Under the pieces are notes generated by a model, which searched no databases, had not been told where the DNA came from, and saw only the letters and a list, made by a program, of their open reading frames with translations. Made by a program: the position numbers and the translations under genes. This document shows, piece after piece, positions 13,401-56,418 of a stretch of DNA of 64,000 bases. Each line of letters starts with the position of its first letter. The first letter of the stretch is position 1. Origin of the DNA: Mytilus californianus (taxonomy: Eukaryota); contig NW_026262734.1 of assembly GCF_021869535.1 (NCBI RefSeq), forward strand, positions 52,948,001 to 53,012,000, written 5' to 3'.

Positions 13401-15074
13401 TAAATTTGGTTAACACTTCCCGCAACATTTATATTGAATATGAATATTGCTCATCATAAACAGATAATGATTATGGATATCTCTGGATACCCATCCTATA
13501 ATTTATTTACTTTTGGTAATCTGACGCAAATAATGTCTTAGGCAACCTCTTATTACCCTGAACTGCAATTCATTTTGGTTAAATCTGTTCATCCTATATA
13601 TAATTATATGACTTTTAAGGGGTCTCATGGTTTCTCCGGTTATATACAATTAATAAAAAAAAGATTTTGTTGACATTTTAAAAATAAATATGATATATTT
13701 CACATTCTCATTACAGGGTTTTTTGTTCGTGAATTAAATAGAGGAAATATGACAGGTGTAACAGGCGATTTTGAAGGTAATGGTTACAGTTTCAAACATA
13801 ATTATTTCATTAATCATAGTAGAGGTCATATTAAGACCAATATTCAATTCCTAAAATCAGAATTCGAAACGTAGGGTTGATAGTACAAATCAAATACTTC
13901 AAAAACTAGAAAAACTGCACAAATTCCAAAATTATAGTTAAGGAATGTCAAATTATGATACATTATCGCGGTGTATATTTGAAACATCGTTATTTATTCC
14001 GCCATTTCCATATCTTACAGGTTTGGAAAACTTTAATTTGGAAGACCTCCATGAATTGCGACATGAAGAAAAGGAAGAAGTTAAAAAACAGATTGAAGCC
14101 ATATATATTGAGGCAACCTCTTTGGAGAAAAAAGCCAGAGAATTGGGTATGAATTGTGTTTTCTCATTTATGCCCAAACCGCCACAAATGTCGTGATATT
14201 TTTCATACAGTATTGTATAGATTACGCTGTTTAGATCATACAATTGAGAAATAATTCATTTAGGCTTGAATTTATACTGATTTTACCACGGATTGACCTT
14301 TTATGCTAAATATTTTACAACGACCGATGGCATGGATAATATGCTCTTCATTTTTTAAAACTTTATTCAGCTACGATCAATTATCCTTGGCCAATTTGTA
14401 ATGGCTCAGCGACTGCGTATATATCTTTTTTAAAAGTGTTTCAAAATTAGTATCTTATTCCAACAAATCGAAAATTGTTACTGTTTTTGTTTTTTTGTGT
14501 ACATATGCAAATTGAAAAAATATGATTTATTCTAGGAAATTACACGCACAAATATTATATTTCCCTACCATTTTAGCATGTGATACAAATTCAAAACAGT
14601 ATATTCTTCGCCACGCACAAACCTTAACAGAAAAAGCAAATGAGATGAAAGAAAAGATATGCTTAGCATCAGGTGATTTATTTCTTTATCTGTATTATAT
14701 TATAGATATACATTTATAACACAGTAGTGTTATTTTTATGTTAATACTGTAGACTTTTGTAGTTGAATATATCTGTTGGCACGCAAATTGGAAACTGAAA
14801 AACAGAAAATTCAAAAGGCACTTAATCAAATCCACTTGTCATAACCAAATTGACAAAGCCACGACAATAAACACAAAATCGGGAACAAGACAAACATCAT
14901 TCCACGGAATTGGTTTGCGGTTTATTCCTTACTTTATCATTTGTTTATTATCTCAAAACTAGTGTACATAACACACTTTGGCAGTTCACTTAATACTGAT
15001 CAGTGTTTTATTTCAATTTTCTTATGATGCCCTTTATTAGTAAAAAGAAAGGATTCATATCAAATTTTTACTTC

Positions 15075-15147
15075 CCCACACACACATACCAGCACACCCA
15101 CATACACACCAACACAACAACACACATACACACACCAACACACAGAA
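15075..15147. repeat. Imperfect CA-rich microsatellite in a transposase intron
   Basis: CACACACACATACCAGCACACCCACATACACACCAACACAAC... Confidence 0.7.
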
Positions 15148-15422
15148 GGTCTGAAAAAGTTAATTTATAATTCTAAAGAGGTGAATGTCAACAACCTCAC
15201 AAAGAAATGAAAGAATCATAATTCATATTTTATTGTAAAATTCAGAGTTTACCCAGAATCATATCACTCTTAACAAATCTGTCAAATGATCCCTGAATAA
15301 ACAAGTAATATTTTCAATGATACGTTTTTATTACAATTGAATACACATAAGTATGTATAAACAATGTCATTTAGCTGTAAATTTGAAGTGAAGAAATGTT
15401 AACCTTATATTCTAATATTAAG

Positions 15423-16511
15423 GGAAATCATTCCAAACACCTGATGAACTACAAATTGCTATAAAGCAATCCATAGCTTCAAACGAGGAACAAACATTAA
15501 TAGTTGAGAGACTTAAGAGGAACTGTTCATCCCATGGCTTAGAATACAGAGGTCAAACACCAGGGAATGGGAATTGTTTTTTTGAAGCAATCACATGCCA
15601 GCTAGATAGAATTGGCGCAGACGTTATTGCTCCCGAACAATTAAGAACAAATGTTGTAAACTACATATCAACACATCCTAGTTTTGAGGTAAACTAATTT
15701 ACTTGTTAAATACATTCACTAATTATCAAACTCCTCCATGGACAGAAACATAAAGAATTAGTTGGACATGTTTTCAGGGGACAAATCAAAACCGTTGGCA
15801 ACAATAGTGGCGCATCAGCACAACTTAAATATATGATTTAAATCAGTTAAGAAGCTATTAACACACAAATACCATCAAAAATACTTCCGACAGAATATTA
15901 ATTTGGAATTGACGTAACTGCCCGTAATACCTGTGATTAATGCAATTTAATATTTAAAGATTTACAAACTGATAAAAGAATAAGCATCAGTTAAGACTTT
16001 CATATCAACCAGAATGCTTTTTTCTGCAGATGTTTAAATAAATCATTTACAGTTAATATAGTACAATGCTAAATAATAGGTATTGACAAAAAACAATAAA
16101 ATAAATAAAAAATGTATGTTATGATCATGATGATTTTTGATAAAATGTAGTTATAAAAGTATTTGTTTTGTATTAATCAATTTCAATGTACAGTAGTTAA
16201 TAAAGACTTATGTAAGTAGCTTTCTTTCAATCAATAGGGCAGTCAAGGCATTGTGTTATTAGAAAACTTCGTTGAAGACAATTTTCCGGACTACTGTGAC
16301 AGGATGTTACAGAATGGAGAGTACGCAGACCATGTTGTGGTCATTGGAATGTCCAGAATGCTACAGAGAGACATAGTTATTGTCACCAGTGCTCCCAGTA
16401 CCAATAATGAGGATAGTGTCCTTTGGGTAACTGGTTGTGATGGTTTTTCCGGTAATCCTATTCTTCTTGGGCACATTTTCGAAAACCACTACCAGTCACT
16501 CCAGCCAAAAG
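15423..16511 (+). CDS. UIM-like motif plus OTU cysteine protease domain (two exons) within the transposase gene
   Basis: DELQIAIKQSI (LxxAxxxS), then RGQTPGNGNCFFEAI (Cys 15575-15577), GEYADHVVVIGMS and ILLGHIFENHYQSL (His 16487-16489). Confidence 0.88.
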
Positions 16512-17989
16512 GTAACTGATAATAGAAATTATATAATTTATGATTATCTCTCAGAAAGAGATACCTTTACAGTTATAGTTTAAAGTAACGCATATGTAAA
16601 TCTATGTTAAAAAAATAATGTCTACGGTTGATAGTTGGGAAATATCTTATAACACGAGATATAGTTGTGGAATCTGTTAATCTAATGATTCCAATAAAAT
16701 TTGATAATTTGTTTAGATTATTTACAAAAAGTCATACTCTTCTTGTCTGACTTCATCGGGCATGATCACCTATTCCAATGACGTCATTATATAAAATTCA
16801 GAGGAAAGCAAAATATTTGTCGTCATTATTATATTTCGACTAAGGAAGGACTTCGATCAAGTGACCCACGTTTGGTAAAATGTTGATCAATATTGTGCTC
16901 AGAAAGGAATAAATACCATAGAATCAGTAAAATGTCCATATTTATATATTTGATATTTTATCAAATTGTTTTTGGCAAAACGAAATGAAATAAGTTTACT
17001 TTAACTTTGTTCTTCATTAGGCATTTTCACATTTTCGATAGGAGCGACCCTAATGAGTCTACGTAGACGGAACACATTTTTAAGCCTTATATCTTTGAAT
17101 TAGGTAGATCATCACTATATATCTGTATATCGCCATCTTGAATTGTAAAATAGCAGCACACAAGCGACAAAGTTCTTTATTTAAAACTGCAAATTTTGAG
17201 ACATAAATGCTATTCATTTTTAAAACTCTTGTTTGATAAATGTAAATAAGTGCATTATATCATTGAAAAAATAAGTGTTATTGTAAAAACCGGCTATCAG
17301 TCTTTGTTTGATTCAATTTGTCAACTGAGCTAATTAACGGAAGATAACTTATTTGGTGAATTTTCTTTAAAGGAATGATAATGAAATTTCTATTTTTCGC
17401 AAGAAAACGGGATTTATTTTCACCCTTTTTCTTTTGATTTTCTACTAAATTGTGGCTATGTATAAGAAAATTATGTCTGAGAAAAAAATTCAGTAATGAT
17501 CTACCTTAAATCGTTTTACGTTTTTTCACTGTAGACTGTTTTTGAAAAAGAAAAATATTAAAGGAAGTATTGTAAATGTGATATTTATATAAGTTTACTT
17601 TACATAATTTGATTACATAATTACTGCATTGATATCAATCAGCATTAGAGGCAAAGTTTTTCTAATTGGCAAATACATTCAGATGCAAAAAAGCTTTATT
17701 TTAACAGATAAACTAGTATTAATTATAAATTATTACGTTTTTTTGTTAATTGTAACGTTTATACAACAAATTTTAGGTGACAGTGGCAAACTTGATCACC
17801 ACACGAATGATAAGCATGCAACAAATGATGATAACCTTTTTATTCCTGTTGATGTGTGCAACGAAGAACTCAGCAACTATAACATGACACATGATGTTGA
17901 AGGTACAATATTGTTCCTTCGGAAATGTTCACTAGCCATACTTATCATCAGTGATTTTAAAATGATTTGAATAACTTATAATTAGCGGG

Positions 17990-18115
17990 AATTTCTCGCT
18001 ACATTGAAGACCTGTTGGTGACCTTCTGCTGTTGTATTTTTCTACGGTCGGGTTGTTGTCTCTTTGACACATTCCCCATTTTTATTCTCAATTTTATTAT
18101 AAAAAGTAAAAGTCA
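17990..18115. mobile_element. End of a high-copy mussel-type non-autonomous repeat (Helitron/Helentron-like) in an intron
   Basis: TACATTGAAGACCTGTTGGTGACCTTCTGCTGTTG...GGTCGGGTTGTTGTCTCTTTGACACATTCCCC; a related fragment lies near 28880. Recognised from memory only. Confidence 0.45.
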
Positions 18116-18639
18116 TTTTATCATCCACTTTTATACATAACCTACCATTAGTATACATAGACGTCAATATTCTATAAAAAATAATTAGTTGTATTATAAA
18201 GTTGCAGTTTATAGATACTACCAATGAGCATGACTTTATCGAAGGCTTTTCGAAAGTCAACAATGCATTTAAAACACATTTTATTTCCATTTCTCCGTAC
18301 TTCCAACGACAAAATTATTATACTTAAATTTGACTTTACATGCGAAATTTAAAGTGGTTTATCTAACGTCATTTTGTCGCAATAGTTGTATCATGTGTCC
18401 TCCTTTTTTATTATTAACTGTAACGTCTATGTTATACTGCAAATGCGTTTTATTATTGTATTAATACTGTGTCGCAAAGTATACTTATGTTTATAATTGT
18501 ATTTTTTGTAACTCGTTAATTGTTTTGTCAGAGTTAAGCCATTTTCCATTATTTGCTTTTATAGTGCGTCTTTTCTTTTAATGTTTTACTGCTGTTTTAC
18601 GTGTAATGTGCAGGTTTGCGCCTGTTGAAACGTTCAAAT

Positions 18640-18905
18640 ATATTATATGCAACTATTTTTTTGTGTTATTAAAATTTGCTGTTACAAAATATTAGAAATT
18701 ATTATAAATTAAGGAATGTATCTCCCTCATGCAAAGCTCTGATTTCTTTCACGGATTTGGCTATACTTTTTGGACCTTTTGGATTATAGCTCTTCATCTT
18801 TTATATAAGCTTTGGATTTCAAATAATTTGGCAACGAGCATCACTGAAGAGACATGTATTGTCGAAATGCGCATCTGGTGCAAGAAAATTGGTACCGTTA
18901 ATTTT
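18640..18905 (+). mobile_element. Penelope/retrozyme-type non-autonomous repeat with hammerhead-ribozyme core
   Basis: CTGAAGA-GACA-TGTAT-TGTC-GAAA-TGCGC-ATCTG-GTGCA at 18844-18882, inside a repeat I recall as abundant in Mytilus. Confidence 0.55.
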
Positions 18906-21664
18906 ATTGTGCAGAGGTCGTTTGTTGGTATTTTTCATCGATGTCATCATTTGTTTTTAAATTTATAACAAGTAAACTAGTGTTACTACATAGCAATACA
19001 TATGCTTTTCTTACCCTAGATATGCCATTCGTAGAGTTTGTGAGATCCACCTTCATCAAAAAACGGAAAAATGGTACTGATTGCATTGTTAGACGTTTAA
19101 GGTATGGGAAAGTTTATTTTAATCGAAAATATATAGTTTTGAAATCAACTAATTTCTATATGCTACCTTCTTCCTATGACCTAATGGTTTCAATAGAATT
19201 AAAAGAAAATAAATATCTATCACAGCAAAACATATACCTTCAGATTATTGAAAAATAACTCTGTTTGTTATTCAGAATAATTTTACTGAACTTCAAATAG
19301 TCTTACAAAATATAAAAATCACTGTATTAACAAAGGGATCATTTTTAAGAACTCTATTTTTTGGGGGACAATTTAAGTCTATTATACTATGGTGTAACTC
19401 TTTCCAATGTTTCTGAATATATGGATGAATTTTTGGTCACACTATTACACTGAAACATATTGTTGTGTTTTATCAGCTAGCATTTGTGACTTTGGCTTCA
19501 GTTTTTGCTTATCATTCAACAGAAATGAAGTGGACAACGAAGACGTCATAACCAAGCATGTAATGGATATAACAATCACAGGGAATTTTATTCACAGGAA
19601 AGCAAATAAAACCACATTGCAATACAGGTGTGAAAGGTAACTTTAATCATCTAAGTCGATAATCTATAAAGGAATTTTATCTTGAAATAAATCCACTCTT
19701 GTTTTTCTCCAAATAAACAATAAATAGAAAAAGAGAACAACTTTAGTAACAATCGTAAACATTCTTAAAGAATCTATTTACATATCTTACATATCAAATT
19801 TGCAAGACAATGCTGAGTTAAAAGATACATTTGTGACAGAAAATAATATTGGTATAGTTTTGAAAGAGATAAGTTGTATAATCTTGACTTCTGGTTGTAT
19901 GTTATTCTCTTGCTTTTTTTCAATAATATACGTTTTGTGTTATAGTTTATACAGTAATTATAGTATGGCCTTTAATAACAGATAGTTCCGAAAGCTTTTA
20001 AACGTATTGAACTATGAATTTTCTGAAATATTGCACAACATTTTTCTCTTTGGTTATCTATGAAGTTAAGATGCATATTTGTTTAAATTTTATCATGTTT
20101 ATTTTAGATGTAATAAACCAAGAGGACAAAAAAACAGGTCCTTTGAATACCAGGGCAAATAATTGTCAGGCATATGTGTCATTCCAGTATGTTATGTTAA
20201 TGTAATATTCATTTATCTCTTTTACTTTTCTTTTATGATGCAAAACTATAAATTAATTTATAACTTTTAAGCGTTTGAACATCATTATTTATTGATCCTA
20301 ACATCCTTGTTGTAGTTAAGCAACCTTTTGTCCGTGTCTTGAGAGTGGGAATTAAATGCATTTATCATATTACTAAACCAAACACATTTAAACAGGTATT
20401 CACCGGGCATACACCATTCATGAGTTTCTGGCTAGTTTACCTGACATTTCATGTGATGAGCGGGTCAATACACCCTGTCATGGTTGAAATTATTATATAG
20501 AGAATCCCTGTATCAAATTATATAGAATTTGGTATATATCATTTTGATGATAAGTTATCAATTTACAAGGAGAACACAACAACCATAGCAGTTATTCGAA
20601 GTAGCCTTACACATATTTTTAGAAAAAATAATCCTTTTCTTCAAGTCCGATAGATCTTAAATATTGCTTACAAGCTGTTTTAATAAATATAATAATGATA
20701 CGTTTGGCAAAACAGTACTAACCAGTGACGTTGTACATGTAAAAAAAAATCATTAAAGGGCATGTTAATATCTTCTTACACAGATTTTTGACCCATTTGA
20801 GTAAAAAAGCAGTAATAATTCGGCAACAACTAAAACACAATGGACACAGTTTACAGATAAAAGAGGAAAAACACCAATCACGCCCAGATCACAGCTTACT
20901 GCTTTATATAGATGCTTTACTTGATCAGGTATTCATGTCGTCGGTATTATATATAATTTATTGCTCATAACGAATTGACTTATTTTTCAATTATAAGTTG
21001 CTGGCACTCTTATAAACACAATGATAATAAAAATTGTGTATGCTGACATTATTGGAGTTTAATATTTTCTCAACCATTCTGTTCTTTTCGATGTCTGTGT
21101 TTGTCTTCCGGCGCATTTTTTCATAATTTGCAAAGATTATAATAAATGAATAGGTTGAAATAAATCAAAAATAAAATGATTAGGATAAAATTGGCTTGCC
21201 AGAGAGTCATTAATGCATTTACATAAATATCGGACGCTTGTATGAAATATTTTAATGAAAAAACCAGTTTAAAGCTGAATAGCATTGATGATAAAATATT
21301 CTAGAAGACATATATTTTTACAATGACATATATTGATACAACGACATATTTTGTGTTGATTTGAAAAAATCCTTAAGCTCAAAAAGATTTTAACTAAATT
21401 TGAAATTAGTTGTAATTGACACGAATTTAATTTTATTTCATTATCAATAGGGGAAAAAACCCATGGAAATATTGTGCAAAGCATGGAAATGGGCTCGAGA
21501 TCAAGGGCATTTTGATGTGCACGATAGAAGATACTATCTGACACCAGTTGACATTAAGAATATATGTCAACGTTACAAAATGGATAAGAGGTATCAAAAC
21601 ATAATCAAAAGATTTACTTAAAATATGTACTTACTACTTTGTTCTTCTAAAAAATCCAAAGAAA

Positions 21665-21852
21665 CAGGCTCATTGTTGAAGGCCGTATGGTGACCTATAG
21701 TTGTTAATGTTTGTGTCATTTTTGGTCTTTTGTGGATAGTTGTCTCATTGGTAATCATACCATATCTTCTTTTTTATATTTGTCTCTACGTATCCAGTCA
21801 TCGAACCACATCTTCTTTTTTTATATTTGTCTCTACGTATCCAGTCATCGAA
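21665..21852 (-). mobile_element. High-copy mussel-type non-autonomous repeat (Helitron/Helentron-like) with a ~46-bp local duplication at its end
   Basis: GAAGGCCGTATGGTGACCTATAGTTGTTAA...TTGTCTCATTGGTAATCATACCATATCTTCTTTTTTATAT is the reverse complement of the copy at 34790-34960. 21761-21806 is repeated immediately after. Confidence 0.6.
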
Positions 21853-21869
21853 AAATAACACATTATCCG

Positions 21870-22560
21870 GACTTCAGTTACCTCTGATAACTTGAACCAA
21901 ATCTTAATATTGACAAAGACTTTGCTACCTCTGATAACACTTAACATATACAGACTTTGGTAACCTCTGGTTAATGAACACATATATGGACCTGGGTCGC
22001 CACTTGTACCCTTAAATGTTTGTAGAATTTGATAATCACTTTTCACCATTTTGTTAACTTTGGTCACCTGAAACATATATATAATGATACACAGGTATTG
22101 ACTAGGGCTACCTTAATCGTACTTGTGTTTCCTATGTCTACTTTAGATATGTATATAATCTATATCCCTTTTGAAACCGTACACATATATTGACTTTGGT
22201 TACCACTGTTCACCGCAACTTTGGTCACATCTGGACAATTTAAAAAAAAATGATAGCTTTACACAAAGTATATCCTTGGTTCCGTCTTGTTACATCTACA
22301 TACTTTAGTAAAGTGAAATTTAAAGAGCATTTGGTATTTAGTACCTTACACTCGAAATGACGTTGGTTACCTCCATCACATTTATAGATACAGCCTTTGG
22401 TTTGTGGTTCTTTAAACTGATGCACTGTTTGCAAACCCAATGGTTCGTCTGTTAAAATCATTACTTTATTCACCATTTTAATCTTTTTACCAATCTGATT
22501 GTAAACATGCACTTTACACAGTAAATTAACTTTGGTGTTTTCTGGTCAAATTATACAGAT
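21870..22560 (+). repeat. Degenerate block of 36-bp satellite motif in a transposase intron
   Basis: GACTTTGGTAACCTCTGGT, ACTTTGGTCACC and ACATATATTGACTTTGGTTACC, in the same orientation as the left array. Confidence 0.65.
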
Positions 22561-23222
22561 GTACTGTTGACATTGATTTTGTATATGTCAGTACTGGTAT
22601 TGATCTATGATATTTCCTCATTTGTTTTAGAATTCACCAGAATGATGCTGTAGCTGTACACGAGCTATGCACACAAATACTGAAGGAAGAGATACTTTTC
22701 TACCAAGAATTGAAAGAGTAATTATTCTTATATAATAATGTACTTTTGTAAATTTTAATAACTGATATAAGCATAATGCTGATAAAGAGTAATTCTGAAA
22801 TTACTGATTGATACCCTGTTTTGTTCTTCAGACATGACTGGATTGCCTTATGTTCAAATAGTTTTTATAGTACTCGTCTGTCCAATTTCGTATATGATTT
22901 TGTCTGTAAAATGTTTCAATGAGAGCTGTACAGATGAGTTTTCTGTAGACTGAACGTATATCTGACTCCTCATAATAGATGATTTGTATTTTTGGTTTTT
23001 ATCCTTTTGAGTGTTTCAGTGCTACACTTGTTCACAAGTCATATATTTTGTCAATATATTTTACATTTTTGTCTTTTTCAGTTTTAATAGAGGTTATTTA
23101 ATATGAGTACAATGTAGCTAGTTTGTCGTCTTCTTTTCCATTAAATGGACATGATTTCAACATAAAATATATAATTCATACTCATACTTTTGGTCATTAA
23201 ATATGTAACATTTACATTGTAG

Positions 23223-26200
23223 GGGAGTACAGCCATTAGTAATTATTTACCAGAATGAAGCACAAAGAAAAAGAATGGTGAAACTAGCAGAAAATGTGGT
23301 GTTTTTAGATGCTACATATAAAGGTATATACTTGTATATAATCATGGAAATTTCAATTTAAAATATTGATACGTTTAAAAGAATTGAACTGTGTGACAAT
23401 AAACTTACAACATGTTTTTTGTTTGTTTTAAGGATTAACTGCCTATGGTTATTCATTCTATGCTCTTGTTGCAAGAGATGAACAGCAAGGCCGAGGCACT
23501 CCTCTTTCGTACTGTATCTCGTCAGATGATACTGGTGAAGTTGTCAAAATATTTCTGAGATCTCTGAAGACTACGGCTGAAAATCATGGATTTGATTTCC
23601 GTCCAAGGTTTGTGGGTATCAAAGTTGACAATATTTCGAATTCAATATCATTGCTTATTAACACTTTTCATTTTCGTCTTATTATTTGTTTACAATTAGT
23701 AACATTATTCGGAGTCAACATCAAATCTGATATGGATATAAAAGATAAATAAATACCATTCAATTATATGTTTTAATTAATTTGGCTGTAAAAATTACAG
23801 GTTAAACTATGACATTATTCACATATTCGTGCAGTGATAGTTATTTGAAATGACAAATACACAATGCTATGAAAGATTCATCTAAAGAAACATTTTTTCA
23901 TGCATATCAAAATTAATACAATTAAGGTCCACAATAATTTCAGTTGAATTTTGGCAAAGAATATTAGATAAATAATTTTTGCATAATAATATTTTTCTAA
24001 TGGACTAATGAAACTTACAAACACATCAATTTCCTTAAAATCTTTTGAGTGTGATCTATAGCAAGGCTTTAAAACCAAAGCATTTAAGATTAAAGCATAG
24101 TCAGGTTTATACATAACATAATAATTAAAGCTTTTTTAGGCTTGTTTCCAAACTTTTTAATCACAAATTAAAAATCTAATTGATATAAAAAAAAAAGAAT
24201 TTACATAATTATTTACAAATTAACAAATAGTATTATAGAATAAAACCAATATGAGATAAAGATATAGATTGTTGATACTGCAGTGTTACATTTTGTTTAC
24301 TAGATCTTTTATGGTAGACAGAGATACCAAAGAAATCAGCGCAATTAATGAAGTATTCCCAAACAGCTCTGTTTTACTTTGCTGGTTTCATGTTTTACAG
24401 GTATTATATTATTCAATATATGTATCATACATTTTACCTTATTCTTTATGGGAAAAAAATCAGTTATTAAATGAGAGTTATTCTGTGAAGTTTCACTCTT
24501 TTGGATCAATAAGTATTAATTGCATTGGATTTAACATTTTATATCTTTTTTTTGTGTTTATAAGCTTGAGGTCAGTTTTGAATTAATAAATAGACTCTTT
24601 CGCATTAATACTTTCATAGATCAAATATTATCTTGTTGAAAAATAATTAGTCATGATATATTCAAGACAATGTTTAATTATTATTATCTTTAAGACATGA
24701 ACTAAATATAAATGATTTGATTTACAGGCTGTGTACAGATTTTTGAATAAAAAAGAATCTGGTGTATCAGGACCCATGCACGCACATACCAGAAAAAAAG
24801 TTATTGACTATATTAGAACTATGAAAATATGTACCAAGGTAATCAAACGTGATAGTTAAGACAAATAAAATATAATGAACCTATGATACCACAGTGAAAT
24901 ATAATAATTTTTAAATTGGTCAATAATTTTGAGTTGGTCCTGACAAATTCAAATAATGTATTCGAATATTTAATATGTACTAGGTGAATGTTAATTTACA
25001 TAGTATAACTTGACCTGCTTCTGATAATAACAGTTTTATATGCAGAGGATGTGAAACATTGTTAAAAAATTAATCACGAGTGTGTTGCCTCACAATGAAA
25101 CACGATTGGTTATTGATATGTTTATATTATAAGAAAAATCCCTGTAGAAATGAAACCTCAGTGGGATCTTTTTCTCCTTTTCCAACATTGTAATTGTTTT
25201 AATATCAAAATCATATCAACAAGATTTTTCAAATAGAGTCAATTAAAACGCAATAATAATAATAATAAAAAATACAATCAATGAATTTTGGTTGATAAAA
25301 GATGAAAAAAAAACACTGAAACATATAGAAATGAATCTCTATTGAATTAAAGCAGTAAAATAATTTGGAAAGTACAAATAGTTGCTTAATGCGATTTAAA
25401 GATCTTACCTATAAATATACAATGCTTATGAGTACACGCGTGTTTAATCTATAAAATCTGATTTTATACTCAAAAGAAATGTGTCAATATAATTTTTCCT
25501 CAGAAAGAAGACTTTTCTCAAAAAGTTTAAATGTTGCAAGAGAAGATGCCTTCCAAACAAATAGCAGACTACTTGTTAGACAACTGGTGTACTGACAAGT
25601 GGGGATGTCGATGGGCCAACTATGGAAGACATTTTTTTCATGAAGATCAAGATACAAATAACTTAGTTGAAAGGTTATTAATACATTTTATTACTATACA
25701 CCTTATATTTTACAAGATCGAAATTTTAAGCATCATCTAATTATCATCTGTTTGATAATAGTAACTAAGTATATTTTATTTTGGGGATAAATTTTCTGAA
25801 CTGTCTCTGTTTTTATGACCTGATTTATAAAAAGTATTACACTTTGTCTAAATCCTACTTCTTCATGGGTAACCAAAGACAAAGCAGGATATAAACTTTA
25901 CAATTTTTAACAATATGGAGAGGATTTTTGCCGTTCTTTCATGATAGGGTTATGCAAATTTAATACAAATATCATAATTGTCAATGCAAGTCGATAATTA
26001 CATAAAAGCAGACAAAATGAAAAAATGTAGTCTAGCAAAACCTGATGTGTATGAGGATATTAAAACAAAAAAATATAATGCTACTTATAACATTCAAATG
26101 TTAACACATTAATATTTTATGTACTTTCTATTTGTACATTCAAATATAAATCATAAATTCAAAGTCCTTAACATTTTGTCATTTTCAGGTTTTTCCTGGG

Positions 26201-26290
26201 CATGAAATACCATTTCCTTGGTGGGTATGCCAATAGCAGAGTAGAGGACTTACTACTCCTTCTCCATGGAAATGTAACTATGTTTTATGA
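23223..26290 (+). CDS. MULE transposase DDE catalytic core exons
   Basis: VVFLDATYK (D1, 23308-23310), SFMVDRDTKEISAINEVFPNSSVLLCWFHVLQ (D2 at 24317-24319 plus CxxH), and QDTNNLVERF (E, 25669-25671). Confidence 0.92.
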
Positions 26291-26497
26291 GTAAGTAAGT
26301 TTAAATTTGTCACAATCCTGTTCTTCTTATCGTTCACTTGAATCGTCTGAAATTAGAAAGATCATTTTAATTTAAGATGCAAATACATTGAATATTGAAT
26401 ACTGTGAATTCAATTTTTTAAGAAATAATTTATTATTAGATCTTTGAATTATGTTTTCATAACCAAAAATAAATTAACAAAAACATCGTAATTTTAG

Positions 26498-31318: not shown

Positions 31319-31329
31319 CTTGTTAAGTT

Positions 31330-43300: not shown

Positions 43301-44720
43301 CATAAGGTGACCAGAGGTCACCAAATCTGAAATCTGCATTAGGTGACCAGAGGTAACCAAATCCAGTATTTCCATAAGGTGACCAGAGATAACCAAATCT
43401 AATATATGAATAAGGTGACCAGAGGTAACCAAACCCGTTATTAACATAAGGTGACCAGAGGTCACCAAATCCAATATATGAATAAGGTGACCAGAAGTAT
43501 TCCCGTTGTAGTAAGGCAAACAGAGGTTAACAGATCTAATTTCTGGTAAAAATGACCACATGTAATCAAAATTAAATATTTGTGTAAGGTAATCAAGAAA
43601 CAAAAAATGATTTGTTCAACTAAGCCTAAGTGGCCATTACCAGAAACGATTGCAAGTTTTAAGTTCAAAAAGAATATTAGTTGCAGCATTATATGAACTT
43701 TGTGTACATATCTATCATATTAAAGGTTTAATACAATAAATTAAATGCATACAAACCACTCTCAAGGTGACCACAAGTATTCAGATGCAATATCGCGGTA
43801 AGGTGAGCAGAGGTAACAAAACCTAATATTTACATTATGTGACAAGAGCTAGCAAATCCAATAAATACATATGGTGACCAGAGGTAACCAAATCCAATAT
43901 CAGCATAGGTGACTAGATGAACGTATTCCAATATTTACATAAGTTGACCTGAAGTAACCAAATCCGTTATCTTCATTAGGTGACAAGAGGTTACCAAATC
44001 AATTATCTGCATAAGGTACACAGAGGTAACCAAATCCTATATATGCGTAAGATGACCAGATGTAACCAAATCCTATATGCGGAAGGTGACCAGTGGTAAC
44101 AATTCAAATATTTGCAGAAGGTAACCAGAGTTAACCGAATACTATTTTAGCATAAGTTGACCAGATGTAACAAAAGCCGCTATTTGCATAAACTAACAGA
44201 GGTAATCAAATCCAATAATTGCATAGGTTGACCAGAGGTAATACAATACTTTTTTGCATAAGATAACCAGAGGTAACCAAATTCAATATTTGCATTAGTT
44301 GATCAGAGTTAACAAAATCTGAAATCTGCATAAGGTATTATCCATCATATTAATTGATTTAATCAACAAATTAAATGCATACATACCATTCTCATCTAAA
44401 ATTTGTATGGACTTCTGAAAAAAGAAGATAAAAATATAATAATTGTATAAGGAAATCAATTGATTTATTCAGAAGTATCAAGTGAGAACAAGCATAAATT
44501 GACCCGATTTTTAATTGTGAATGTTCTTGACAATTTTTGCAAGTTCGTTCATTTTTTTTAGATGATCAGGAAGAAAATTCGATGGTAAAGTGTTTTCAAT
44601 GAATAAACATTTAAAATGTTATGCAACAATCATCTGTAGTCTTGATGAACCAATTATAGATATCAAACCTGTTGTTGTTCTTTTTTTCCTCTCTTTGAAT
44701 GTCTAACTTTTTCTAAAAAA
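31330..44720 (-). repeat. Right internal satellite: ~803-bp higher-order tandem repeat, each unit with a cluster of inverted 36-bp motifs plus AT-rich unique DNA
   Basis: Marker TTAAATGCATACATACC at 36187, 36991, 37794, 38598, 39401, 40204, 41007 and 41810 (803-804 bp spacing). More diverged copies lie at about 31499, 32496, 33287, 35355, 42713, 43741 and 44371. The 36-mer core is GGTGACCAGAGGTAACC. Confidence 0.95.
34790..34960 (+). mobile_element. High-copy mussel-type non-autonomous repeat nested in the right satellite
   Basis: TTGCCAATGAGACAACTG...AAATGACACAGAAATTAACAA...GTACGGCCTTCAACAATGAGC; same family as 21665-21780. Confidence 0.6.
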
Positions 44721-45792
44721 AAGAATAAACAAAATCCATGAAGAGAAACTAAAGGTTAATATTTTTAAAGTCAGTACAATTCAGAGTAAAAATATATACT
44801 CAAATTATTAAATTGCAATATAAAAAAAGGGTAACCTCTCTGTCAAGTATAGATTACCTTGAACAACACGAACCATTTAGTGCTTTTAAATAAGTGTGGG
44901 TGAAACATAAAAAAATTAATAGCTTAACGTGAACTTACTTCTAGCGAAAACTGTGTGAATTATATATATTCATAGGAATTAATTCAGAAGCATGCTTTAT
45001 TATTTTTTCTGCATGCATTTATGTTTATCTATCATTGATTATAATGTAATGTAAAATTGATACAGGATAGAAATGAAGTTGTGATAAAGATACATGACTT
45101 CACAGCAGAGATAATAAATAAGGAAATTGTAATTATTGTGTCAAGCAGAACATTAAGTGAGAACTATAATATGTAAAAGTAGTGGCATATTGACTACACA
45201 TTGATTATATTTGAAGCGTACAGATTTAGGATAAAGCACACCAAACTAAAAGTTCACAGTATTTTATACATTACCATACATCTGTATATAAGAAACAAAA
45301 AAATAAATAAAATCCAACAGCTTATACAATGCAAACAAGAAACTGACAAGTTATATAACAAAATCATTTGAAAAGACAATATTTAAAGAAGACTTGAAAA
45401 GTAGTGTGCACTAAGCAAACGGTACCTATGCCAGCGTCATTCTGTATTAATCAACTAAGTCATGAGGGGGAACATTAAACGTCTGCCTTTACCATGTGAG
45501 TCTGAATGTGAGAACAACAAATCTTTGGATTTCAAAGATATCTTAGAATAAGTTCATTTAGTGCAATCTATAAAAAATGTAAGAAATATCAACATGAATA
45601 TATCTACAAAAATTAATAAGTCGACTTCTGTTATGAAATTAAACGCAACTTATAGAATTATTGAACAAATGGAAGAACAATGATCATTCTACAATTTTGT
45701 TATATCGCATTTTGTCCTTGCAAATTAAATTCTATTTCATTGTATTACTTTAAAAAAAAAATAGAAATGGTAGAATTTTCTATTGCACTCAC

Positions 45793-46175
45793 CAGGTGGA
45801 AAAATTGAGCACAAACTGCATAGTCCTGGAGTCATACACTTTTTGTGGAAATTCCTTTTACAGCATGAACATGCTCTCTGCAATATTTAATAGACATGTT
45901 CAAATTCTATGAATTAATGTAGTTATTGCGAAAAATGTTAATATTAGTGAAAGTTCATCAAATTGATATAAAAAAAAACATTTATATTCTAACCTACAAT
46001 ATCACAAGGTTCTGTTAAAAAATTATCAATTTTAACCATAAAACGTATTTAAATAAGCAATAAAAATAATAAAGCACCCTGTTAAGTTGAACATCAACGA
46101 TCTATAAATGTATATTTACCATGTTAGTTGGTTCTTTAGCACACAAGAAGCATGTCATAACAGCACCTTTTGTTT
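45793..46175 (-). CDS. PHD finger (C4HC3) encoded by two exons
   Basis: TCFLCAKEPTNM|RACSCCKRNFHKKCMTPGLCSLC; strong GTAAAT and GTGAGT donors. Confidence 0.8.
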
Positions 46176-49100: not shown

Positions 49101-52100
49101 CCTTCAAAAATTGAGGTCAGAATCAGACAATCTGCACGGGACACTTTCTGGAAAACGGAAATATGTATAAAACAAATTGTGTGACAAGAACATTGGATTT
49201 ATTTAACTGTTTCTATTACATCGGAACGTGAAATTATATAAGGTTTTTCTTGCCTGGTTCAATACTTCTTCAAAGTCAGTATGAAATTACCCATCAAAAA
49301 TACGAGGAATAAAAGTAAATTCATTTTTCTCATAGTTAATGAGTTGTGCATATATTTCCTTAACGACAATTCCAAATGGGATATAACTCTTATAAGGAAT
49401 ATCCAGATAGCTTCGGTTAAATAATATATGACATCATAAGGGTGTAACGGGTAATTGAGTAAACTAATAAAAGATCGCAGTAGATGTATCTACACGCAAA
49501 ATCGAGATTGGGGAGGTAACTCTATTAATGAGAGTAAAAAGTCTTCGTTAGGGCAATGGCGAAAGCTCATAAGCTGTACGATATCATATAAAACAAAGTC
49601 AAAGCTATATCTGTTAAAAATAATAGCTCAACTTAAAAAAGGCGAACAAAATATAAATAATAATATCAAAATAATGATAATAATTATAATCCTTAAGTAA
49701 AGCTAAAAGTCTTTCAACCGAAAGGTAGAAAGACCTTAAATTATATAAAAGGGAAAAAATAAAAGATGATTTAGTGGAACAAATTTTTCATTCTCTGCAA
49801 AAAGGGTGGTGGGTGCGAAAGTAACTTTTACAATACACAGTTTACTTTGGTGAAATTGAAAATGAATAAAAAATGCATAAAACAAGTTTAGAATGATAAT
49901 TCAGATACCCTTAATGGAGGAATGGATCATGTAGAAAAAGCGAAATTAAATGAATTGATCCTGGAAGTTACAAAAAAATAAGCATGCTTTAAAGTAGCCG
50001 ATGAAAAAATCAGTCAACTCTAAAATAAATGCACTGAAATATGATAAAACGGTTATTAAATAAATACTTTTAATTCGTTTACCTGTACACACTGATCCGT
50101 CCGTTTTTGCAGTACACTACAATAAAGATTAATTATCTGAAAAAAAAAAGAAAATGATAAGGTCAGATCTTTTCAATCAGTATGATACAAAGGAAACCAT
50201 CAACAAAACTAAATATCACAAAGGTGAAGACATACAAGTTTGATCAAGATAACACATAACATAAAGTACCATGATTATGTTATCAGTTTAAGACAGATTA
50301 TTTAAAAAAATCCTTGTACATTTTATAGAACTAAATAAAATCAAAAGACCTCCAAAAACCTGAATGACTTACCTGCATTTTTTTTGTTGTTAAATCTTTC
50401 ATCAATGATTATTTCTGCTTTTCAATGGAAATAAAGTAGTGCTTACATTGTCAAATTGGTATTTAATTTTTTTTGGTATCTGTCATATTTTCTTCAATGG
50501 CAAAACAATGCATTTTAAACCAATATGCTATTAAGCCATAGTGACTATATTTCTTGGCATAAAAGAAAACACAATTACTTTCAGGCCAGTAACTCTTTAA
50601 GGGGTCACAAAAATTAGCAATTTAGTGGCATCAACCAAACAATGGGTAGTTTTATTTGTCTGAAAATGCTTTACCTAATGAACCTTTTCACCAATGTCAG
50701 ATTTAATTTTATTTTAGATACCCTAAGGATGATTAAGCTTACGTTTGGTTGGAATTGGTTCAGTAGTTTCAGAGGAGAGTTCAAGATCTTTGAAAACGTT
50801 TAACCTTTATTACATAAATTAAACCATTAGTACTGTTACCTGATCATTCAACTCCTCCTCAATTTTTAAGCTCATTAAATCCGATACGTAAAGAACATTC
50901 CCATACACCGTACCAAACTTTTCGTCAGCATTTCCTTTCCATGAATTCCATATAGTTTCCAAAAATGCTTTAAATAAATAATCATTTTTAACAATCAAAG
51001 TAATACAAATAATAATACCTGAAACAAATGACATCAATTAAGTTTCTTTTAAATTTTGGAATTCTACGAAAACAGAAGTGCAATCTTGTTTAGCACAGAA
51101 GATCACAATATTTGGGTAGGGTGACCAGAAGTAGCCGCAGTCAATATTATATAAACAATAGGTGCCATATTATTTAAGTCTATAACCGTTTAAATTGCAA
51201 AGAGGTAATAAAGGTTTACAAGTTACAGAATGACATGAGGTAATTAATATCAACATATGTGTAGGGTTAGCAGAGTAAGTCAGAAACTATGTAGGGTGAC
51301 CAGAGGTCAACCAAAGTCACTATCAGTGAAGGGCGACAAGATGTAACCAGTCAATATATTTGTAAGGTAAGCGAATGTTAACTAAGACAATATGCGTAGG
51401 GTGACCAGATTTAATCAAAGAATATATATCTGTTTAAATGTCGCAGAGCTAGCCAAAGTTCATAACTTTGTCACCTGACTAAAGTTAACTAAAATCAATA
51501 TATGTGTAAGATGACCACAGGTTACAAAAGTCAATTACTATGTAAGGTGACCAAATGTAGAGAAAGTCAATAAATGGGAAGGGGTGACCAGAGGGCACCA
51601 GTCCATAAATCTGTAGGGGACAAATGTAACCCAAATCTGTATATGTGTGAACTGCCTACAAGTTAACAAGTTTGATAATTGTGCGGGGGTAACTCAGGTC
51701 AATAACTTAGTAGGAAAAAAGGTTATAAAGTCATTTTATGTGAAGGGTGACCAGAGGCAACCTAAGCCAATATATGAGTAGGGTGACCAGAGATAACCGA
51801 AGTTAATATCTGTGTTAGGTGACCAGAGGTAACCAAAGTTAATATATGTGAAAGGTGACCAGAGGGCACCAGTCAATAAATCTCTATGGCGACCAGATGT
51901 AATCTTTAATCAAAATCTATATCTATGTAAACTGCCGACAGCAAACGAAAGACAATATCTGTCACGTGTATGGCGTTAGGAAGTAACCAGTTTCAATATA
52001 TATGAAGGGTGACCAAAGGTAACCATTGTTTAATCTGGAAGATATGATTTTAGTATGCACACAATTACTGCACAGAGTTTGGTAATTTTAATTTTCCAAC

Positions 52101-54909
52101 GAAAGAAAGAGGTAGGGCCAATATGCCGAGGATTTTTTTTCACAGAAGGGCCAATTTCAAAAAGTGCCGACAGAATAAAATTTACTATAAAAACAAAAAA
52201 TAAAAATGCTTTTTGATCAATATCTCGATTTACATATAGTATGATATGTGTGATCAATAGTTAATTTAACCCTAAAAAATGATGAAAATCCAATATCCGG
52301 ATTTTCGGGTGTTTTTATGTGGAAAAAACAGGGAATCCCCCAAGAAGGACATTTCAAACCAAAAAAAAGTTATGCTTTTTATGACTGTTGTTATACATAC
52401 TACTTTTTACTTCAAAAATGAAATTGGTTTAGTGTGTCCTTATTACATAAAAAACAACTTTTTAAAGAAAAAATTGTAACATCGATAAATTGTACCGATA
52501 TACCTTCTAAATAAGAGTCATAATGATCAGAATCGCCGTAGCTCCACCATTAGAGCACAGAACTACTAATAAATGATGAATTTGAAGAAAGGGTTCGAAC
52601 CTCGCTCAGAACTTTTGCATTTTTTTGTGTTGTTATATTAAATTTTAAAGTTTCTATCATATTTTTTCGGATGTTTGCTTGACTCATAGAGTCATTCTGG
52701 TTCATTTTGACTATTCAGTTAGTTTACTAGTATATAATTTTACGTGTATCAAAGAAAAATAATGTATCGCTTATTGTGTGCAATCCTATGACTGTCCATA
52801 CTCTTGAATTACTTTCTATTCATGTGTTTACATTATTACGTATTTCCAAGGGACAACTGCCGTCAAATTGATGTAGGTGCCTGTACATAACCAATAACAC
52901 GAGAATTAATTCTATAGAAATTAAGCCTACATGTTGCGGGTGTAATATACACATAACTTAAAATAAGGCCATTGTATACAAGTTTCATAACAACAAAAAA
53001 CAATTCGTCGAAACCTTTTTTGAACATGGTATTATATGTAACAAATGCAGTCAACAACAATTTTGTCGCCAAATCACAAACTGTAAAGATACTAGTACTG
53101 AAATTTTTACCACCTTCTATACACGGGTACCTAACTCATCAGAAAAATAAAACAACATAACAGAACAAATCAATTACACTACAAATCGCGATTGTAGGTA
53201 AAACATCAAGAAGCTGTTGCATCTGTATCACAACGAAGGGCCGATTTGTTAAAATTACAGAAAAGGCAATAAAACATGAAGTAGTAACACAGGGTGATCT
53301 ATGACCAACTGATGTAAGATGTTCTCCGGTTTTAATTTTATATACATGTACATGTATTTTCTTGTCTTATCTTATAGACGATAAAACCTTAAAAGACCAG
53401 GACAAATACAGATATACATATTCAAAATGAGAAAATCACGATTTGAATTAGTTCGATATTATTTGGCTCCTTGACAATTTACATGGTATGGCACCTCGCA
53501 TAAAGGATGTTAATAATAAAATAAAATCAATATTAAAAAAACAATAGTCTTGGCCTTGTTTTTGTAGGAATACCTGTTCAAGGTATGAAAATAAATAATG
53601 TGACGTATTTTCTTGTACTATAATTAGCATCTATCGGGCTATTTAAAACATTATTTACCTATCTTATCGAATGAAACAAATCTCCGGCAAATTGGCCCTC
53701 CCTCTTTATTTTTTTGGATTCCTAGCAATTTTATGTTATGGTTTACGTCTACTTTGAAATTTAATTGTAATTTTATTTATTTCATATCGGTTCAGAATAA
53801 GATTCTCTTATTGGATAAAAAGGGGTAATATGACATTCATTATTTTTCAGTAATAAATTCCATCCTTCATTAACAGAACAAAACGGACCAGAAAACTGGT
53901 CGTTAACGAACTTTTACATGAGAATGACAGGTGGGCGTGGTTTCCGTCTGATAATGACCGTTGAGGCGTGGTTTCTCTGTAAATGACCGTTGGGGCGTGG
54001 TTTCTCTGTTAATGACCAATGGGGCGTGGTTTCTCTGTTTAGAGAGATTTATCCATTTTTAAAACATGTTCCTTTCTTTAATATTATATTTAATTTGTTG
54101 AATTGTTTATTATTTGTTTTTGTTAATAATAAAATTAAAGAGAACTTGATTAAGTATTTATATACTGAAAAATTGCACTAAAATGAATGGGAGTATTCCT
54201 ACAACTGGTCTTCACTCTCTGCCATACAAATCAACTACTCGAGTTCGCTTTAGGCATTTTGAATTAATGAAAATTTTCAAAACATAGTTCCTCAATGAAA
54301 TAAACATAATAGTTCTTCAAAAAAGACTGGTCATTATCGTGATACATGGACTGCCCGTAGGACAGTAATATTGACTATGACAGCGATAATGACCTCGCCT
54401 TCGCGTCATTATCGCTACCTTAGTCAATACCACTGTCCTGTGAGCGGTCCAACTATTATATAAATATTAAATCCTGAATTAAAAGGATTAAGTCGATTAG
54501 AATGTGACCTTACTCTTAATACTGTTCAATGGCATTTTAATATAATTACACCAACTATATATAGCTAACAACATTACAAATGTCTACATTCATAAATACA
54601 TATAAATATGTTACTGGTTGAGTTGACAAATAAAACTGTAAGATCAGCATAACATCAGAAGAAACCTTCTCAAGCTCAAGAGATAAATCATTGAAAAATA
54701 TTATTAAAAGTAAATGTCATAATATGGAACCTTCTGGTACTCTTGATCAAACCTCTAAAGTAGGTAAATCCCTAACTTTGTATTGTGTAACTTTTGTCTT
54801 TCGTTTGTAAGGTGGCACTAGATCAATAGCATTTCCTTTCTTCTTGAAGATAAATATAGAATTGATTTAAAAACTTACCTTTACTTCTTTCTTTTATGAC
54901 AGCTAACAT
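45793..54909 (-). CDS. Ulp1/SENP-family (peptidase C48) cysteine protease plus PHD finger; intact reading frame
   Basis: Exons 54879-54909 (ATG, tentative), 50840-50967, 50083-50136, 49073-49147, 48692-48760, 48176-48261, 47523-47625, 46901-46997, 46120-46175 and 45793-45877 are GT-AG, phase-compatible and stop-free. Motifs: SDLMSL..EELNDQIINLY, VTWFKKDDIQQYDTVIGCINDGKCHWVAVVMD (His, Asp), YPLQNDFSSCGVYCLKF (Gln, Cys). The 3' end is either 45554-45567 (DCTK*) or the 29.4-31.3 kb exons. Confidence 0.86.
51110..52030 (-). repeat. Block of inverted 36-bp satellite motifs in the first coding intron of the Ulp1-PHD gene
   Basis: Repeated AGGGTGACCAGAGGTAACCAAAGTTAATAT; spacer subtype is the reverse complement of that at 21870-22560. 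Confidence 0.8.
53923..54039 (+). repeat. Four copies of a 29-30 bp unit containing a GC-box-like GGGCGTGG
   Basis: AATGACCGTTGGGGCGTGGTTTCTCTGTT-type units starting at 53923, 53953, 53982 and 54011. Confidence 0.85.
54347..54451. repeat. Imperfect palindromic hairpin repeat with a CTCGCCTTCG centre
   Basis: GGAC..GGACAGTAATATTGACTA..GCGATAATGAC-loop-GTCATTATCGC..TAGTCAATACCACTGTCC..GTCC. Confidence 0.7.
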
Positions 54910-56409: not shown

Positions 56410-56418
56410 GTGCTCCTA
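56410..56418 (+). repeat. Right 9-bp target site duplication GTGCTCCTA
   Basis: Identical to 7022-7030. Confidence 0.93.

Follow-up and report, generated by a model that had tools for sequence, protein, structure and literature searches.

Convergent genes for an OTU-bearing transposase and a C48 peptidase in a probable giant Mutator-like transposon of Mytilus californianus

The 64,000-nucleotide stretch of the Mytilus californianus genome analyzed here (the window; contig NW_026262734.1, positions 52,948,001 to 53,012,000) contains two multi-exon genes whose spliced models converge, confirming in part an earlier reading of the window made from the sequence alone. We consider it likely that both genes lie inside a giant Mutator-like transposon 49.4 kb in length, of which positions 7031-56409 are a single copy, a judgment that covers jointly the identity of the element, its two-gene content, and the inferred roles of its proteases in transposition. 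The features of the locus are as follows, with coordinates in the window.

7022-7030, no strand: left target site duplication (TSD) GTGCTCCTA, 9 bp, by direct reading; the same 9-mer lies at the right end
7031-7073, + strand: left terminal inverted repeat (TIR), 43 bp, of which the 41 inner bp match the right TIR perfectly (blastn)
7500-13400, + strand: subterminal 36-bp satellite arrays with a GGTNACC-type motif resembling the inner TIR (TRF and repeated ORF patterns)
13945-27832, + strand: gene 1, OTU-MULE-SWIM transposase, 17 exons, 998 aa (alternative 1011 aa), from collinear tblastn, GT-AG junction search and assembled translation
Gene 1 exons 1-6, + strand: 13945-14146, 14577-14672, 15423-15688, 16238-16511, 19020-19101, 19523-19636
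Gene 1 exons 7-12, + strand: 20154-20186, 20784-20928, 21451-21590, 23223-23323, 23433-23607, 24304-24400
Gene 1 exons 13-17, + strand: 24728-24838, 25504-25673, 26189-26290, 26498-26724, 27171-27832
15423-16511, + strand: OTU domain in two exons, with GNGNC (catalytic Cys) and ENHY (His), from Pfam halves and the alignment with protein P0097
25528-25530, + strand: in-frame TAA stop in exon 14, codon 621 of the model (assembled translation)
31300-44340, - strand: repeat block between the genes, with 36-bp arrays inverted relative to the left arrays and a macro-repeat of ~803 bp
56321-45737, - strand: gene 2, 11 exons, 307 aa (alternative 318 aa), Ulp1/C48 peptidase ending in a Cys-rich finger, from NCBI model P0099 and junction search
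Gene 2 exons 1-6, - strand: 56321-56236, 54913-54879, 50967-50840, 49388-49291, 49097-49073, 48760-48692
Gene 2 exons 7-11, - strand: 48261-48176, 47625-47523, 46997-46901, 46175-46120, 45877-45737
45800-46161, - strand: Cys cluster C-x2-C-x9-C-x2-C-x4-H-x2-C-x5-C-x2-C in the last two exons of gene 2 (translated sequence)
51100-52000, - strand: 36-bp satellite patch in intron 2 of gene 2 (repeated ORF patterns on this strand)
56367-56409, - strand: right TIR (blastn and ends of homology in copies L002 and L006)
56410-56418, no strand: right TSD GTGCTCCTA, a perfect repeat of the left one (direct reading)

Elements of the Mutator/MULE superfamily generate TSDs of 9-11 bp, and the window element has both such a TSD and paired TIRs, which align at 7033-7073 versus 56407-56367 with 100% identity over 41 bp (blastn) or over 43 bp with one mismatch. 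The list of inverted repeats for the whole window was swamped by satellites, and the true TIRs were located through the ends of homology with the Mytilus coruscus copy L002. Specifically, homology with L002 starts at the left TIR, and homology with both L002 and a sister copy (L006) stops exactly at the right TIR. The sequence-only reading had placed the genes between TIRs at 13749 and 54909. The genes do lie between real TIRs, but these fall 6.7 kb and 1.5 kb outside that range, at whose ends no inverted repeat was detected (blastn of 13.0-15.5 kb versus 53-56 kb, and direct reading).

Copies of the element were found at different sites. L006, which is 99.2% identical, lies on a different scaffold within unrelated flanking DNA (flank ATGCCATGG), and its gene 2 adjoins the same TIR, while L002 has its own 9-bp TSD, AATTGAATA, and lacks both protease regions. 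Since a 99%-identical copy occupies another site and an internally deleted M. coruscus copy carries a TSD of its own, the element family has moved recently as one unit. Copies L002, L003, and L004 were also considered as orthologous loci, an interpretation that was rejected on the grounds that homology ends exactly at the TIRs and that flanks and TSD differ.

In the left arrays TRF reported a 36-bp period with 109 copies (9264-13191), repeated ORF patterns start at ~7.9 kb, and the inner TIR motif matches the satellite units at 85-90%. The block between the genes includes two TRF arrays (33697-34181 and 42771-44336) and about seven units of the macro-repeat, visible as recurring ORF patterns at ~35.7-42.2 kb, and inverted-repeat pairs join 9-13 kb to 42-43.5 kb. 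The satellite arrays that separate and flank the genes derive from a TIR-like motif. A Pfam search of eight additional long ORF pieces within the element detected no other cargo domain.

The product of gene 1 begins with a coiled region; the OTU cysteine protease follows, then a region of Cys and His residues, the MULE DDE core, and finally the SWIM finger. The OTU-transposase gene proposed on the + strand is borne out as a multi-exon model. Positions 15422-27826 are collinear with the 911-aa Mytilus galloprovincialis OTU-MULE protein P0097 (VDH94519.1), in which both domains occur in a single annotated protein, and P0081, P0082, and P0059 are likewise collinear with the gene (tblastn). One junction is ambiguous (19636/20154). 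The MULE core (PF10551), defined by D, D, E and CxxH motifs, is recognizable by FLDATYK, MVDRD, CWFH, and NNLVE in the assembled translation and by a match of 26.9 bits on the exon piece 24260-24583. Among the homologues, P0081, P0082, and P0097 exceed the Pfam MULE cut-off, and the sister-copy product P0002 carries PF10551 and PF21056. A SWIM finger (CxCxnCxH) C-terminal to the MULE core is common, not universal. Here it reads CNC-x9-CKH across the 26724/27171 splice junction and is unscored by Pfam because the motif is divided between two exons; paralogues are named SWIM-type in UniRef. The OTU domain (PF02338) scored 14.8 bits at 15422-15694 and 21.1 bits at 16238-16516, each alone below the cut-off of 23.3. 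Aligned over 295 aa with the N-terminal part of P0097, it shows 42% identity, and the P0097 OTU itself passes Pfam at 31.8 bits. Both the xGNC Cys and the HY His of the OTU signature are present, with Asn instead of the usual Asp three residues before the catalytic Cys. The closest OTU relatives found were those of Mytilus SLIP-GC-like host GTPases, at 48% identity.

The stop in exon 14 is the only disabling change in a coding sequence of ~3 kb. The aligned codon is CAA in L002, L003, and L004, and homologous proteins align across the site. Given this nonsense codon, the window copy would depend on an intact one at another locus. Among the copies compared no intact master was observed, the window copy having the stop and L001 wholly lacking transposase exon 14.

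Gene 2 begins 88 bp inside the right end of the element, and its first exon lies outside the range 13749-54909. Exons 1-3 were taken from the NCBI model of the sister copy (P0099), and one junction is ambiguous (49291/49097); the assembled ORF is open both in the window and in L006. The catalytic residues of C48 peptidases are all present: His in KCHW, Asp 17 residues on in SMDP, and an oxyanion Gln six before the Cys in LQNDFSSCG. The sister copy's 323-aa product is recorded with PF02902, and the window exon piece alone gave a weak match (E 0.19). A protein search for Ulp1 homologues was restricted to candidates whose length was 0.55-1.75 times that of the query, and with the short exons as queries only P0098 and P0099 were returned; NCBI also lists products of 323 and 495 aa. 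NCBI models break both genes of the element into fragments. The residues in the OTU and C48 domains suggest that neither is catalytically dead. C48 members vary in substrate, with NEDD8 or another modifier as alternatives to SUMO, and 'desumoylase' is an assumption for gene 2.

The Cys cluster at the end of gene 2 had previously been labelled a PHD finger and read as a histone-tail reader. PHD fingers are C4HC3 modules with a last loop of 12-46 residues and a conserved Trp before Cys7. The cluster departs from PF00628 in having a last loop of 5 residues and no Trp. In Pfam searches of the gene 2 exon pieces no PHD was found, the sole match being C1_1 (E 0.68, not significant); the best PDB sequence match to the cluster was a PKC C1 domain (E 0.13, not significant), and the NCBI records of the 323-aa and 151-aa products list no PHD. 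The loop and both searches thus lend no support to a PHD, leaving weak C1-like matches only. Of the predicted - strand Ulp1-PHD gene, the C48/Ulp1 peptidase with its triad residues and open spliced model is retained, while the PHD label and the histone reader are not supported.

Comparison of copies indicated constraint at the level of the family. Between L003 and the window, 39 of 1614 coding sites differ, as do 237 of 5106 intron sites, and against older copies in general coding DNA is less diverged than introns, with omega ~0.5-0.65. Among young copies, coding and non-coding DNA diverge about alike and omega is 0.5-1 from few changes (~1 for gene 2, from only 5 changes), so selection is visible at the family level only. 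Neutral evolution of the domains, raised beforehand as a possible objection, is countered by the older copies, but not by the young ones, in which omega reaches ~1.

Relatives of the element were found in mussels and fish. At L005, a divergent OTU-MULE paralogue locus of M. galloprovincialis, a convergent C48 gene is annotated downstream. Its downstream region gave no tblastx match to the Ulp1 region of the window, the compared part being tandem repeat with the C48 exons beyond it, and an inverted-repeat search in L005 yielded nothing useful. In Astyanax (L007 and L008), 77-bp arrays in inverted orientation, 98.5-99% identical, enclose the transposase and a convergent C48 gene. The Astyanax mexicanus LOC111195777-type protein (P0088) and VDH94519.1 belong to the same transposase family as gene 1, with collinear proteins and a last exon that is 25-35% identical, and in both cases a tandem array directly follows the transposase and the convergent downstream gene has a C48 match. 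The fish elements differ in being much shorter, in having no OTU in the transposase, and in a second gene that contains a TF_AP-2-like region and in which no Cys finger was seen. When the fish loci were searched by tblastn with the Ulp1 model from the mussel, no match was significant, and no similarity was detected outside the C48 motifs. A compact OTU-MULE-SWIM relative is present in another assembly. No C48 was found within 10 kb downstream in L013 or L014 (tblastn with the gene 2 model), and none is annotated beside a Saccoglossus relative or one P. parva relative. A 408-aa convergent ORF in L013 was considered as a second gene and rejected as low-complexity or coiled-coil sequence of no family. 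As a query, P0097 returned only host OTU-GTPases and no further OTU-MULE fusions.

The layout recalls maize MuDR, in which convergent mudrA and mudrB are transcribed from the TIRs. The two share a MULE DDE transposase, TIRs, a 9-bp TSD, two convergent genes, and a second gene that starts <100 bp from the terminus. Only the convergent layout links the second genes, gene 2 being set apart from mudrB by its C48 motifs and the Pfam record of the sister copy. Unlike MuDR, the window element is found in an animal, is ~10 times longer, has TIRs of 43 bp (about 200 bp in MuDR), and has its transposase gene beyond a satellite array, 6.9 kb in from the left TIR. OTU domains occur also in Helentrons and Ginger1. 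Among Mutator elements, OTU has been recorded in Hydra MuDR-6_HM (table in PMC6446971) and at the C-terminus of Medicago MULE transposases (PMC1702500). As in these, the OTU of the window is fused to or encoded with the transposase, but it is N-terminal, closest to the OTUs of Mytilus host GTPases, and accompanied by a second protease gene. Ulp1-bearing Mutator elements are known from plants (KI-MULEs/Kaonashi) and, as Repbase MuDR families, from Hydra and lancelet (PMC2836005 and references therein), and both Ulp1 and PHD have been published in the hydra and lancelet elements (PMC2836005). They too carry C48/Ulp1 internally, some with a zinc finger (PHD) after it in the same place as the Cys cluster. 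By their published description, the window element differs in that Ulp1 is a separate convergent gene of 11 exons, the finger does not match PHD, and an OTU is co-present. In the literature searched, no paper was found that describes OTU and Ulp1 in one MULE, but the novelty suggested earlier was overstated, since Ulp1 (with PHD) and OTU each have previous records from Mutator elements of animals. The element is thus an unusual combination of already known parts.

We propose that the transposase would bind the TIRs and related subterminal repeats and perform cut-and-paste transposition. The OTU domain and its C48 counterpart are predicted to function as isopeptidases that cleave off ubiquitin-like and SUMO-like modifiers, and their likeliest role would be to aid transposition of the element itself. 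The modifiers might be removed from chromatin or from silencing factors where the element sits, or from the transposase and repair proteins where it excises. Among these roles, anti-silencing is a tentative candidate to which we give a minority of the weight. Alternatively, the proteases may serve the protein chemistry of the element or DNA repair rather than erase silencing marks, the OTU, through self-deubiquitination or polyprotein-like cleavage, processing or stabilizing the transposase and the C48 protein modulating SUMO-dependent repair at excision sites. This is a serious possibility, although still short of even chances. It agrees with the fusion of the OTU in cis to the transposase and with the lack of Pfam or PDB support for a histone reader, and there is precedent in the polyprotein processing proposed for OTU-MULE fusions (PMC1702500) and in the DNA-repair modulation proposed for transposon Ulp1/OTU (PMC2836005). 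The same observations are compatible with anti-silencing. A more ambitious scenario, which we regard as unlikely, is a long-lived bivalve/teleost Mutator lineage that needs a convergent C48 second gene (a mudrB counterpart), with a mussel OTU recruited from a host GTPase, both proteins erasing the SUMO/ubiquitin marks needed by germline piRNA/heterochromatin silencing.

Gene 2 could instead be a recent capture, or a nested insertion of another Ulp1-bearing element or of a host gene, close to the right terminus in a single M. californianus lineage, its pairing with the OTU fortuitous and without a role in transposition. The M. coruscus copies L002 and L004 do lack 44.3-56.06 kb, and in L002 the satellite joins the terminal ~350 bp directly; in addition, the mussel and fish second genes are alike only in C48 motifs, C48 domains are common TE cargo (PMC2836005), and omega for gene 2 is ~1 between young copies. 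However, L002 and L004 are also without the OTU and N-terminal transposase exons, and with their frameshifts and stops they are deletion derivatives, not ancestral forms. Moreover, exon 1 of gene 2 is retained within the terminal ~350 bp of L002 (90% identity at L002 22080-21994, tblastn), so the 5' end of the gene is ancestral to the copies of both species. Gene 2 is also present in L006, and convergent C48 genes occur at L005 and at two Astyanax loci, which answers the earlier concern about a one-off capture and makes such an origin quite improbable. In mussel and fish relatives alike, a convergent C48 has been kept over the long term, which speaks for gene 2 as a probable functional part of the autonomous element and against passive cargo. 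Least probable of all, and in our view very doubtful, is that the host has domesticated both genes, or that they form a decaying inactive fossil, and do not belong to a live transposon family. The stop in the window transposase, the exon deletion in L001, the split NCBI models, and an omega near 1 among close copies would fit such a fate. They are outweighed by perfect TIRs and TSD, at least two insertion sites at ~99% identity, and a deletion derivative with its own TSD in a second species, and by coding sequences of which one has a single disabling change and the other is open in two copies.

Transposon silencing and DNA repair both depend centrally on the conjugation of SUMO and ubiquitin. 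If the proteases promote transposition by removing these marks, the element would be an example of transposon-encoded counter-defence in an animal, and if the lineage with a required C48 and a recruited OTU is real, it would be the first transposon-encoded dual-modifier anti-silencing system. A recently mobile cut-and-paste transposon of 49 kb is far beyond the usual size range of DNA transposons, and its clean ends and gene models can be used for Mytilus repeat annotation, in which both genes are now fragmented. The two-gene layout of transposase plus C48 recurs in MULEs of fish and mussels.

The element ends in a perfect 41-bp inverted repeat (7033-7073 against 56407-56367), identified by direct comparison of both ends. 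Reading of the junctions revealed two extra terminal bases on each side (GC on the left and, strand-corrected, GG on the right), followed by a perfect 9-bp direct repeat, GTGCTCCTA, at 7022-7030 and 56410-56418. On the basis of the TIR extent, the terminal bases and the 9-bp repeat, the element was delimited to 7031-56409, a length of 49,379 bp. Similarity between the window and a copy from M. coruscus (L002) starts at approximately 7031 and ends at 56407, and the final 43 bp of that copy match window positions 7073-7031 in reverse orientation. The sequence-only reading had described two convergent genes between terminal repeats, with 13749 and 54909 as the ends of its range. The convergent gene pair was largely right, but no inverted repeat exists at those two positions, and the ends were corrected to the TIR-bounded interval. 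Outside the element, a stop-free stretch on the - strand (3-311) resembles by eye VMO1 (vitelline membrane outer layer protein 1) and probably belongs, as an exon, to a host gene next to the element.

Features of the element, from left to right (window coordinates)
Left end: TIR
About 7.5-13.4 kb: 36-bp satellite arrays
13945-27832, + strand: gene 1, OTU-MULE-SWIM transposase
15423-15688 and 16238-16511, + strand: exons of the OTU domain of gene 1, GNGNC and ENHY present
Inverted 36-bp arrays and the ~803-bp macro-repeat, about 13 kb
Gene 2, - strand: Ulp1/C48 peptidase, whose second intron holds a patch of satellite
Right end: TIR

The window is AT-rich animal DNA, with exon-sized pieces that match Mytilus proteins, and no further recognisable coding cargo was found inside the element beyond genes 1 and 2. 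About seven units of the ~803-bp macro-repeat lie between both genes (35700-42200), within the 36-bp satellite, and this repeat is also found, at 88-91% identity, in the copies from M. coruscus and from M. galloprovincialis. The 36-bp unit itself (7846-7871, 8061-8080) matches the inner TIR (56358-56383; GGTG.CC.CTGGTCACC) at 85-90%, a likeness that would fit the amplification of a transposase-binding motif.

Gene 1 was delineated with P0097, a 911-aa M. galloprovincialis protein with Pfam OTU, MULE and ZSWIM1-3 RNaseH-like domains, which aligned collinearly with 15422-27826; the alignment of MULE transposases from fish and hemichordate begins at about 20.8 kb. A frame-keeping search for GT-AG junctions yielded a model of 17 exons encoding 998 aa, or 1011 aa with an alternative junction. 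With the Pfam OTU model, the two exon halves of this domain reached scores of 14.8 and 21.1 bits; the DDE region retains the motifs FLDATYK, MVDRD, CWFH and NNLVE, and the SWIM motif (CxCxnCxH) is split by an intron. Exactly one internal stop interrupts the reading frame (TAA at 25528-25530), in an exon spanned by the homologue alignments, and the window copy is thus non-autonomous through a single lesion. This position reads CAA in three copies from other mussels (L002 and L004 from M. coruscus, L003 from M. galloprovincialis), while the M. californianus copy L001 lacks the stop-bearing exon owing to a 477-bp deletion. The OTU domain (15423-16511) shares 48% identity with the OTU at the C-terminus of "nuclear GTPase SLIP-GC-like" host proteins of Mytilus (P0100-P0102), which carry OTU and GTPase domains. 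This suggests that the domain may have been exchanged between the transposon and a host GTPase gene family, in either direction.

The start of gene 2 was taken from P0099, the NCBI model in a sister copy, which places exon 1 at 56321-56236, 88 bp inside the right element end, with exons 2 and 3 at 54913-54879 and 50967-50840, respectively. Motif and junction searches downstream completed an open model of 11 exons and 307 aa (alternatively 318 aa) that ends at 45737; the corresponding NCBI product of the L001 copy is 323 aa long, with a Pfam Peptidase_C48 match. The catalytic His (KCHW), the Asp 17 residues after it (SMDP) and, in LQNDFSSCG, the Cys with a Gln six positions ahead of it are all present, with the spacing of yeast Ulp1. 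The C-terminal Cys cluster, of C4HC3-like order, had been read as a PHD histone reader, a claim for which we found no support: the Pfam search of the gene 2 exon pieces returned no PHD, the NCBI products carry no PHD annotation, and the cluster resembles C1 domains only, with both matches non-significant. Given the lack of a PHD match and a last loop of five residues without Trp, we regard this cluster as an unclassified zinc-finger-like module.

The interpretation of both genes as parts of a single element was supported by copies at other sites. On a different M. californianus scaffold, L006 matches the window at 99.2% identity between 56407 and about 39.3 kb. The match sets in precisely at the TIR, outside of which L006 has unrelated sequence, with other bases (ATGCCATGG) adjoining the element. 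L006 is therefore an independent insertion, and it holds the entire Ulp1 gene, open except for a stop seven codons early. The element has thus been mobile recently as a unit. A ~430-bp MITE- or SINE-like repeat was also observed in the window (5221-5648) and in L006 (3602-4026, 4413-4844 and 14355-14776) at about 88% identity, one copy being nested in the Ulp1 intron of L006 and missing from the window element. L001 (M. californianus scaffold JAKFGE010000006.1) is 99.3% identical to window 13559-35324, which assigns the window to this species; it is either another haplotype of the same locus or a sister copy. The M. coruscus copy L002 retains both TIRs and its own 9-bp repeat, AATTGAATA, at about 91% identity to the window. 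It is a typical internal-deletion derivative that also has frameshifts and stops: the OTU and N-terminal exons are missing with 13.1-21.1 kb, and the greater part of gene 2 with 44.3-56.06 kb. Since exon 1 of gene 2 is kept in its terminal ~350 bp, the 5' end of this gene is older than the deletion. L004 shares this internal pattern, and L003 matches the window only from 23.2 kb onward.

Between the window and L001, the gene 1 coding sequence showed 15 differences over 941 codons (nine amino-acid-changing codons, five silent), with 0.62% in non-coding sequence; between the window and L006, gene 2 showed five (four amino-acid-changing codons, one silent), with 0.44% in non-coding sequence. The figures from these young copies are the neutral expectation after insertion and are uninformative on function. 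For the older copies L002, L003 and L004, omega in transposase exons was 0.52-0.65, and coding versus intron sites gave 39/1614 versus 237/5106 for L003, values consistent with purifying selection during part of their history. Across paralogues, the catalytic motifs of the OTU region were kept at 42% identity.

A convergent transposase and C48 gene also recurs across lineages, being present in a divergent M. galloprovincialis paralogue locus (L005) and in the fish Astyanax mexicanus. At L005, a tandem array lies behind the OTU-MULE gene, and next to it comes an opposite-strand NCBI gene whose C48 match comes from the annotation, its C48 exons lying beyond the L005 DNA compared. The two Astyanax copies (L007 and L008), on different chromosomes and 98.5-99% identical, encode a related 748-aa transposase without OTU and a convergent gene of 516/527 aa with C48 (weak) and TF_AP-2 matches, both genes sitting between inverted 77-bp arrays.

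Convergent second genes of the fish relatives, each with a region matching Pfam TF_AP-2
L007 17040-21843, - strand
L008 16927-21819, - strand
L012 (further fish relative) 13605-19371, - strand

The Pfam TF_AP-2 match at L007:17647-17982 has an E-value of 3.9e-10, and in Astyanax this region is accompanied by a C48-type Q..D...CG exon, an odd domain pairing within a transposon. One Pseudorasbora parva copy also carries a convergent TF_AP-2-type gene. Mussel and fish second genes may share a common descent, their divergence being too great for proof. In ENA assembly ERZ24900295, two compact OTU-MULE-SWIM genes of a related family (L013 2000-10651 and L014; about 8.6 kb, 97-99% identical) each have a tandem array immediately behind them, and a search of the 10 kb downstream revealed no C48.

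Each of these modules was already known in MULEs, including those of animals. According to Bao et al. 2010 (PMC2836005), Mutator transposons carry Ulp1 domains not only in plants but also in hydra and lancelet; the same paper aligns the Ulp1 and PHD domains of Mutator and Ginger1 transposases. Likewise, a C-terminal OTU was described on Medicago MULE transposases and PHD on animal ones (Babu et al. 2006, PMC1702500), and Hydra MuDR-6_HM is tabulated with "Ovarian Tumour Gene" (Dupeyron et al. 2019, PMC6446971). Our literature search, with Repbase outside its scope, found no description of OTU and Ulp1 proteases together in one MULE, of a convergent C48 gene conserved in the MULEs of fish and bivalves, or of a recently mobile 49-kb MULE.

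With the element structure and the protease catalytic residues established, a mechanism can be proposed in which the transposase would recognise the TIRs and subterminal repeats, gene 2 would be transcribed from the right element end, and OTU and C48 would both act as isopeptidases. Ideas published for cargo of this kind include a part in processing the transposase (PMC1702500) and in modulating DNA repair that depends on ubiquitin/SUMO (PMC2836005). Among transposition-promoting roles, the anti-silencing function put forward by the sequence-only reading is a tentative candidate to which we give well under even chances. Most likely, the two proteases are putative accessory enzymes that aid the element's own transposition.
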